From: Podarcis erhardii
Lineage: Eukaryota
DNA length: 64,000 bases
Assembly (NCBI GenBank): GCA_964252035.1
Contig: OZ176208.1
Reading direction: 5' to 3' (one strand)
A program made the position numbers and the translations under genes. Positions 627 through 1,380 of this stretch are shown here, one piece after another. Numbering within the stretch: the first letter of the stretch is position 1; every line of letters starts with the position of its first letter. Under the pieces are notes generated by a model. That model worked only from the letters and a program-made list of their open reading frames with translations. It did no database searches and was not told the DNA's origin.

Positions 627-1098
627 TTGGCGGCGGCGGAGAGAAGCGGGGGCTTTGCATCCAGGGCGTCCGCTCCGGCTTCTCGGGGCTTTCGGCTTTG
701 GCGAGCGCCTCTTCGGGCACCTGGACTAATCCCCCGACAGCAAAATGGGTGGCGATGGCCAGCGCCGAGGCCGGTCTCTCCGGCGCCGCGGCAGAGGGCG
801 CCCCCCTCCTGGGACTGAGGGGCCTCGGGTGCGCCGACGGCTCCCCCCGCTCGGGCCCGCTGCCGGGCAGGCTGCCGGGCTTTCTGCGGTCGGCCATGAG
901 CGCCTCGACGCTGAAGGGTAGCAGAGCCGGAGCCGCCTTAGGCTTGTCGCCGCCGCCGCCGCCGCCGCCGCCGCCCTCCTCCCGGCCCCTGGTGGCCCCC
1001 GGGGGCCCCGTCGGGCCGGGCTTGCCGAAAGGCGGCGCGGGTGGCTCCTCGCTCCCCGCCGCGCTCTGAGCAGAAGTCATTTCCAGCGCCGGGGCCAT
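627..1098 (-). CDS. MSX1: MSX1 (msh homeobox 1) coding exon 1; homeodomain exon 2 lies outside the window
   Basis: Translation MAPALEMTS...[17 protein letters not shown]...[23 protein letters not shown] matches the Msx1 N-terminus: dual Met start (MAPxxxMTS), eh1 motif FSVEALM (915-896) and PWM hexapeptide (669-658). It ends at a phase-1 donor CCA A|GTAAGT; 472 nt = 157 codons + 1 nt. Confidence 0.96.
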
Positions 1099-1151
1099 GC
1101 AGCTCCCCCCGTCCCCCCGCCGGCGCCCCAGCTCTCGCAGCCGTCGCTCAT
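1077..1151 (-). other. Overlapping upstream ORF (24 aa) in the MSX1 5' UTR
   Basis: ATG 1151-1149, [24 protein letters not shown], out of frame with MSX1. Its TGA (1079-1077) overlaps the second in-frame ATG (1080-1078). Confidence 0.6.
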
Positions 1152-1254
1152 GGAGGTGGGCGCGGAGGGTGAGGCAGGCCCGGCCGCGCTCCCGGCTGCG
1201 CGGCGCCTTCGCTCGTCCGGGCTCCGCTTGGCGAGGCCCGGGACCCAGCTCGGC

Positions 1255-1380
1255 GGGCTAATAAAGCCAGGCCGCCCCCGACGGCGGCCAATCCGCGCTC
1301 CGAAGGGGGGTCCCGCTGCCTTCCCATTGGGTGCGGCGCGCAAGAAGGACCAGGGGGCGGAGGAAGAGGAGGCGGGATCG
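1255..1380 (-). promoter_or_regulatory. MSX1 core/proximal promoter: TATA-like TTTATTAG, two CCAAT boxes, GC boxes
   Basis: Plus CTAATAAA 1258-1265 (minus TTTATTAG); CCAAT 1288-1292 (reverse orientation); ATTGG 1326-1330 (CCAAT on minus); GC-box-like GCCGCCCCC 1271-1279 and GAGGCGGGA near 1370. These sit ~160-280 nt upstream of the ATG within a CpG island. The TSS itself is inferred, not seen. Confidence 0.65.

Follow-up and report, generated by a model that had tools for sequence, protein, structure and literature searches.

The leader of the MSX1 gene in the 64,000-nucleotide stretch of Podarcis erhardii DNA analysed here (the window) carries a conserved overlapping upstream open reading frame (uORF) that starts in weak context, and we consider it reasonably likely that this element attenuates and tunes MSX1 translation. 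MSX1 is dosage-sensitive, and haploinsufficiency in humans leads to tooth agenesis and orofacial clefting. If the uORF is a true brake, leader variants at the upstream AUG (uAUG) or in its context could shift MSX1 dose with the protein sequence unchanged, and so could seemingly mild codon 8 variants that destroy the uORF stop.

All window features given below lie on the minus strand. The coding part of MSX1 exon 1 occupies 627..1098 (157 codons plus one base), with a gtaagt donor from 626; exon 2 is outside the window, beyond the window start. The exon-1 protein is 95.5% identical to Podarcis lilfordi MSX-1, and it is also close to the MSX1 of P. muralis/raffonei, Lacerta agilis and Zootoca. 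A MAPxxxM N-terminus is common to tetrapods and fishes, with Met7 followed by Thr in most tetrapods; the sequence-only reading had named the gene as MSX1 with a two-methionine N-terminus, and the MAPxxxMT(S) seen in the protein comparison bears this out. Within exon 1, a (GGC)n run at 958-990 gives nine glycines, and the same run has four to six in Podarcis lilfordi, P. muralis/raffonei, Lacerta and Zootoca; it reads as a coding triplet repeat of variable length.

Three start codons follow one another at the 5' end of the mRNA. The upstream one (uATG, 1151-1149; acctccATGa) has T at -3 and A at +4, which is a weak context, and it is the sole ATG in the window's leader of about 130-140 nt. It lies 53 nt 5' of the first MSX1 start codon (ATG1, encoding Met1; 1098-1096; agctgcATGg; CTGCATGG), which has T at -3 and G at +4, and the uORF frame differs from that of MSX1. 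The uORF (1077..1151) comprises 24 codons plus TGA; it crosses ATG1 and ends on Met7, whose codon (ATG2, 1080-1078; ctggaaATGa; MSX1 frame) has G at -3 and A at +4. The T and G of the stop codon (TGA, 1079-1077) are shared with ATG2, so that stop and start form AUGA at the RNA level. Of the three start codons, ATG2 stands in the most favourable context, with G at -3 in all amniotes examined. Every one of these coordinates and contexts, as first given from the letters alone, matches on the minus strand.

The uAUG is part of the mRNA. Mapping of RNA to 1000-1700 of the window used six raw reads and three Logan contigs from two studies; these runs come from a close relative (a congener), not certainly from the source species, and the RNA label of the contigs is a guess. 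The contigs reach 1227 (X1, 593 nt), 1212 (X5, 575 nt) and 1173 (X6, 666 nt), and by arithmetic X1 and X5 have their other ends at about 635-638, adjoining the exon-1 donor, as RNA predicts. In the stranded raw reads (X23), depth is 4 at 1144-1215, 1.8 at 1216-1239 and zero at 1240-1700, and the first mates are all on the plus strand, the sign expected for minus-strand RNA. These contigs and reads place an approximate transcription start zone at 1227..1239, which is 25-35 nt below a TATA-like TTTATTA box (1259..1265) kept in sauropsids and Xenopus, and they give a leader of about 130-140 nt with the uATG some 80-88 nt from the cap. A spliced mRNA of another squamate (Logan L002/L003, from SRR12657000 and SRR12657011), which encodes a complete MSX1 of 273 aa, starts in the conserved GGCC-T-GGAAAGTG block, roughly 27 nt past the TATA-like box; the first base of L002 aligns to the 1227..1239 zone, and both contigs carry the homologous uATG at -59. 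The RNA support for the start zone is thin, yet it agrees over four runs, three studies and two species. The earlier proposal depended on the uAUG being transcribed, and a transcription start downstream of 1151 would have spoken against it; reads and contigs instead cover 1151 and end at or below 1239.

The position and frame of the uATG are conserved across amniotes. In all 10 informative loci, a single leader ATG stands in the same relative frame and opens an ORF that ends at the +19 TGA on Met7; these loci represent six squamate lineages, with one DNA locus each for turtle, bird and mammal, and the count leaves out Crocodylus (assembly gap) and Trichosurus (no DNA). The spacing from uATG to ATG1 is 53 nt in the window, in Podarcis lilfordi and in Pogona (uORF of 24 codons in each), 50 nt in Rhineura and in the walrus Odobenus (23 codons), 59 nt in the squamate mRNA L002/L003 and in the pigeon Caloenas (26 codons), 56 nt in the turtle Mauremys (25 codons), and 29 nt in Eublepharis and Pantherophis (16 codons). 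Weaker hints to the same ATG and frame, at the protein level, come from predicted proteins that read the leader in the MSX1 frame, where His or Asp followed by Glu, Ala or Asp appears at -50, -59 or -62; they belong to cat, panda, a rodent-type cluster and four further birds. The possible conservation of the uAUG frame and of the AUGA junction, raised in the sequence-only reading, is seen at the DNA level over the amniotes, including the walrus (gctgacATGA at Met7, uATG at -50).

The spacings of 29, 50, 53, 56 and 59 nt all equal 2 modulo 3. On the accepted amniote tree they require at least 6-7 independent changes, each a multiple of three, which gives P at most about (1/3)^6 by parsimony count. 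As a control, the distances from the TATA box to the uATG (79-216 nt) contain all three residue classes. When the 100 nt before ATG1 were shuffled with dinucleotides preserved, 10-23% of the trials for each species produced an ORF that begins with ATG, lies in this frame and ends at +19. As the species are related, these per-species figures were not multiplied, and the spacing rule was used, with the upstream leader as its control. A lone occurrence of such an ORF is unremarkable; its recurrence across amniotes with the frame kept exceeds chance.

The contexts are conserved as well. The uATG has C or T at -3 and A or C at +4 in all loci, so that weakness itself is kept. ATG1 has T at -3 and G at +4 in all loci compared, with a ATGGCCCC core invariant in 11/11 aligned taxa and a -1 base that varies (CTGT in Xenopus). 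At the uATG, CCATG is near-invariant in the alignment and the flanks diverge; turtle, lizards and bird share a CCCC-ATGA-CGGCGGC block at the nucleotide level. Among the uORF peptides, similarity is limited to a loosely kept M-[NS]-x-G at the start and to those C-terminal residues that MSX1 codons 1-7 fix. A coding role for the peptide was considered and rejected, as it is not conserved beyond the part that MSX1 forces, and this suggests a regulatory ORF rather than a coding one.

Selection seems to have kept the uAUG along with its weak context and frame, the last because the uATG frame keeps the overlapping ORF short. Without the +19 TGA, the uORF frame would run to between +109 and +658 across loci (in the window it is open to +370), and the other out-of-frame reading runs to between +146 and +473, except in turtle and walrus; the uATG frame (frame 2) has the earliest stop in most species. 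These data can also be read in another way, namely that CCATGA is kept as a DNA or RNA motif in a promoter-proximal block and is essentially skipped by ribosomes, with the least harmful frame surviving as a tolerated by-product. The weak uATG context everywhere, the nucleotide block common to turtle, lizards and bird, and the early stop of frame 2 all fit such an origin. However, mere tolerance predicts frequent loss of the ATG, which is present in every informative amniote locus, and spacing changes in multiples of three imply selection through translation; in addition, no known motif was identified at the CCATGA block. We therefore regard the by-product explanation as unlikely.

For the attenuating uORF, we propose the following course of events. 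Scanning 43S complexes would meet the weak uAUG first, and most would pass over it. The minority that start there would translate 16-26 codons in the +1 frame, override AUG1 and end at the first available stop, the UGA formed by Met7 and a following Thr or Ser (AGC) codon. Such ribosomes would be released at +19 to +21 and be lost to initiation at Met1. The weakness of the uAUG would make this diversion depend on start-codon stringency, with more of it when stringency is lowered (eIF5 up, eIF1 down) and less when it is raised. The weak context may mean that very few ribosomes start at the uAUG. We infer that ribosomes do use it and that MSX1 is repressed in this way, in keeping with short out-of-frame uORFs that overlap the main ORF, which are typically repressors bypassed by leaky scanning (PMC10275272). 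The sequence-only reading had offered two outcomes, a dampened MSX1 dose or the choice of a shorter isoform; the first is the better-supported half, and the second, by way of reinitiation, is speculative.

The closest likeness is to the conserved Hox uORFs, which depend on stringency through eIF1 and eIF5 and comprise 7-21 codons in leaders of 53-98 nt (Ivanov et al. 2022, PNAS; PMC8892498). Like the Hox genes, MSX1 encodes a homeodomain developmental regulator, and its mRNA has a short leader (about 140 nt) with a single short uORF (16-26 codons). In both, the uAUG is without a purine at -3 and without G at +4, this poor context is kept across vertebrate classes, and the main AUG is suboptimal too (T at -3 in MSX1). 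Unlike the Hox-cluster genes, MSX1 is an NK-like homeobox gene, and unlike the Hox uORFs, its uORF runs across the main start to end on the second in-frame AUG. The effects of the Hox uORFs were shown experimentally (PMC8892498), whereas the MSX1 uORF is known here from sequence and RNA mapping. MSX1 goes unmentioned in the main text of Ivanov et al., and our search of the literature for an MSX1 uORF, uAUG or alternative start found no paper describing the element, which genome-wide uORF catalogues may well list. The MSX1 element appears to be one more conserved uORF in poor context on the mRNA of a homeobox gene, with a stop on the alternative start as its special feature; if the proposed brake is real, stringency-sensitive uORF control extends from Hox-cluster genes to an NK-like homeobox gene. 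As with other overlapping repressors (PMC10275272), it begins in the leader, runs out of frame and terminates within the coding sequence, and the main start is expected to be repressed. Compared with typical members of that group, its overlap is minimal (19 nt), its stop falls exactly on an alternative in-frame start, and it would free ribosomes at the very start of the coding sequence, not deep inside.

The position of the stop raises the question of whether ribosomes terminating at the UGA restart on the overlapping AUG2, so that use of the uORF turns Met1-MSX1 into a Met7-MSX1 shorter by six residues. The AUGA overlap is found in every amniote locus examined, including the crocodile with its Ser AGC; among the three starts, AUG2 is in the best context; and the 16-26 codons of the uORF are in the range that keeps reinitiation competence (PMC8892498; PMC10275272). 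Moreover, the length of human MSX1 is quoted in the literature both as 303 and as 297 residues, so the true start is unsettled and the Met1/Met7 ambiguity is already known; a conserved brake in the leader, if real, would offer a concrete explanation for this long-standing ambiguity. However, any ATG with a codon beginning with A after it (Thr ACN or Ser AGC) yields the TGA automatically, and AUGA is for this reason not an independent signal. Documented AUGA/UAAUG reinitiation depends on a TURBS element (PMC10275272). The TURBS-type overlap of stop and start codons is present in MSX1 (ATG 1080-1078, TGA 1079-1077), but no UGGGA (TGGGA) motif occurs in the uORF or the 60 nt before it in the nine species scanned, and the leader fold is no stabler than shuffles (z +1.34), with no unusual structure. 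In the viral cases (caliciviruses and influenza B M1/BM2), stop and start share nucleotides as in MSX1. The upstream ORF is long in the viruses and short in MSX1, the UGGGA motif 1 and the conserved structure are absent in MSX1, and the restart yields a second protein in the viruses, whereas in MSX1 it would yield the same protein minus six residues.

In cellular reinitiation after short uORFs, the restart codon follows the stop far enough away for the ternary complex to be reloaded (PMC10275272). In MSX1, Met1 precedes the stop by 19 nt and the Met7 codon shares bases with it, so neither stands at a reloading distance of the GCN4/ATF4 type. Furthermore, plain leaky scanning past the weak AUG1 suffices to reach Met7, and a difference of six residues is not known to have any functional effect. 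Taken together, a restart at Met7 is improbable.

A second kind of restart would be farther downstream, with the 40S subunit rescanning after the uORF and initiating at an internal AUG (codon 24-43, in an 'AMGxEE' setting) to give an N-terminally truncated MSX1. No ATG outside the MSX1 frame occurs within 330 nt past the uORF stop in any locus. The first ATG in this stretch lies at +96 to +126 from ATG1 (L004, L005, L006, L007, L009, L011, L014), about 50-105 nt past the stop. Its context is strong, with G at -3 and, in most loci, G at +4 as well (Pogona has A, Pantherophis C); in the walrus it is GCCGCCATGG. The distance is comparable to those favouring reinitiation in p53 (39-42 nt) and preproinsulin (79-140 nt) (PMC10275272). 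Yet few ATGs are expected at about 80% GC, and no truncated MSX1 isoform is documented in the literature covered. The internal Met at codon 24-43 is the sole site to which a reloading distance of the GCN4/ATF4 type could apply, and in the Podarcis lineage, including the window, this residue is now Arg. The next ATG after the uORF stop in the window, and its first possible restart site, is at 895..897 (codon 68, MSX1 frame, inside FSVEALMAD). We consider this route very unlikely.

A broader proposal would join these elements into an amniote-wide module of three starts, in which the uAUG and AUG1 (both weak), together with the better AUG2 on the uORF stop, set both the amount and the N-terminus of MSX1 according to stringency, and restarts at the AUGA or at the strong-context internal Met (codon 24-43) yield short isoforms. 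This would be a TURBS-free cellular switch in place since the amniote ancestor, about 300 million years ago; we hold it to be rather unlikely as a whole.

Several loci depart from this pattern or limit it. In Crocodylus, an assembly gap covers the region from -31 upward, and Met7-Ser is encoded as ATGAGC, with AUGA kept. Some geckos (P0005, P0009 and P0020, seen as protein) have Met-Ala and hence are without the TGA. In one mammalian lineage (P0011/P0134; four contigs, protein only), the leader G-run seems one base shorter than in walrus and panda, and the uATG seems to stand at -49 and so in the other frame. That frame, too, has a stop just before Met7 (TGA at +14) in mammals that carry GCT GAC ATG. 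Among the outgroups, Xenopus laevis (L012/L013) has a same-frame uATG at -47, whose 7-codon ORF stops at -26, before ATG1, and its Met7 is followed by Ala, with no TGA. The ATG of this Xenopus uORF is at a similar distance to the amniote uATG and is at most a candidate homologue of it.

Upstream of the TATA-like box, an inverted CCAAT box (GATTGG, 1288..1293) and a CCAAT box (1326..1330) are conserved from Xenopus to sauropsids. The latter, as CCAATGG, holds an ATG at -229, which was rejected as a uORF start since it is the CCAAT box and lies above the transcription start. The uATG is followed by A (ATGA, 1149-1152), and the untranscribed ORF from the CCAATGG box thus ends on the uATG, which CCATGA probably brings about by coincidence. 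Two copies of the 9-mer GAGGTGAAT, 20 nt from each other, stand some 400 nt upstream of ATG1 (window ~1503-1531), in a block that is recognisable in Rhineura too (L004 ~2560-2600), and the pair may be a proximal promoter element. Farther out, about 600 nt above the transcription start, there is a compound (CT)n/(CA)n microsatellite at 1835-1880.
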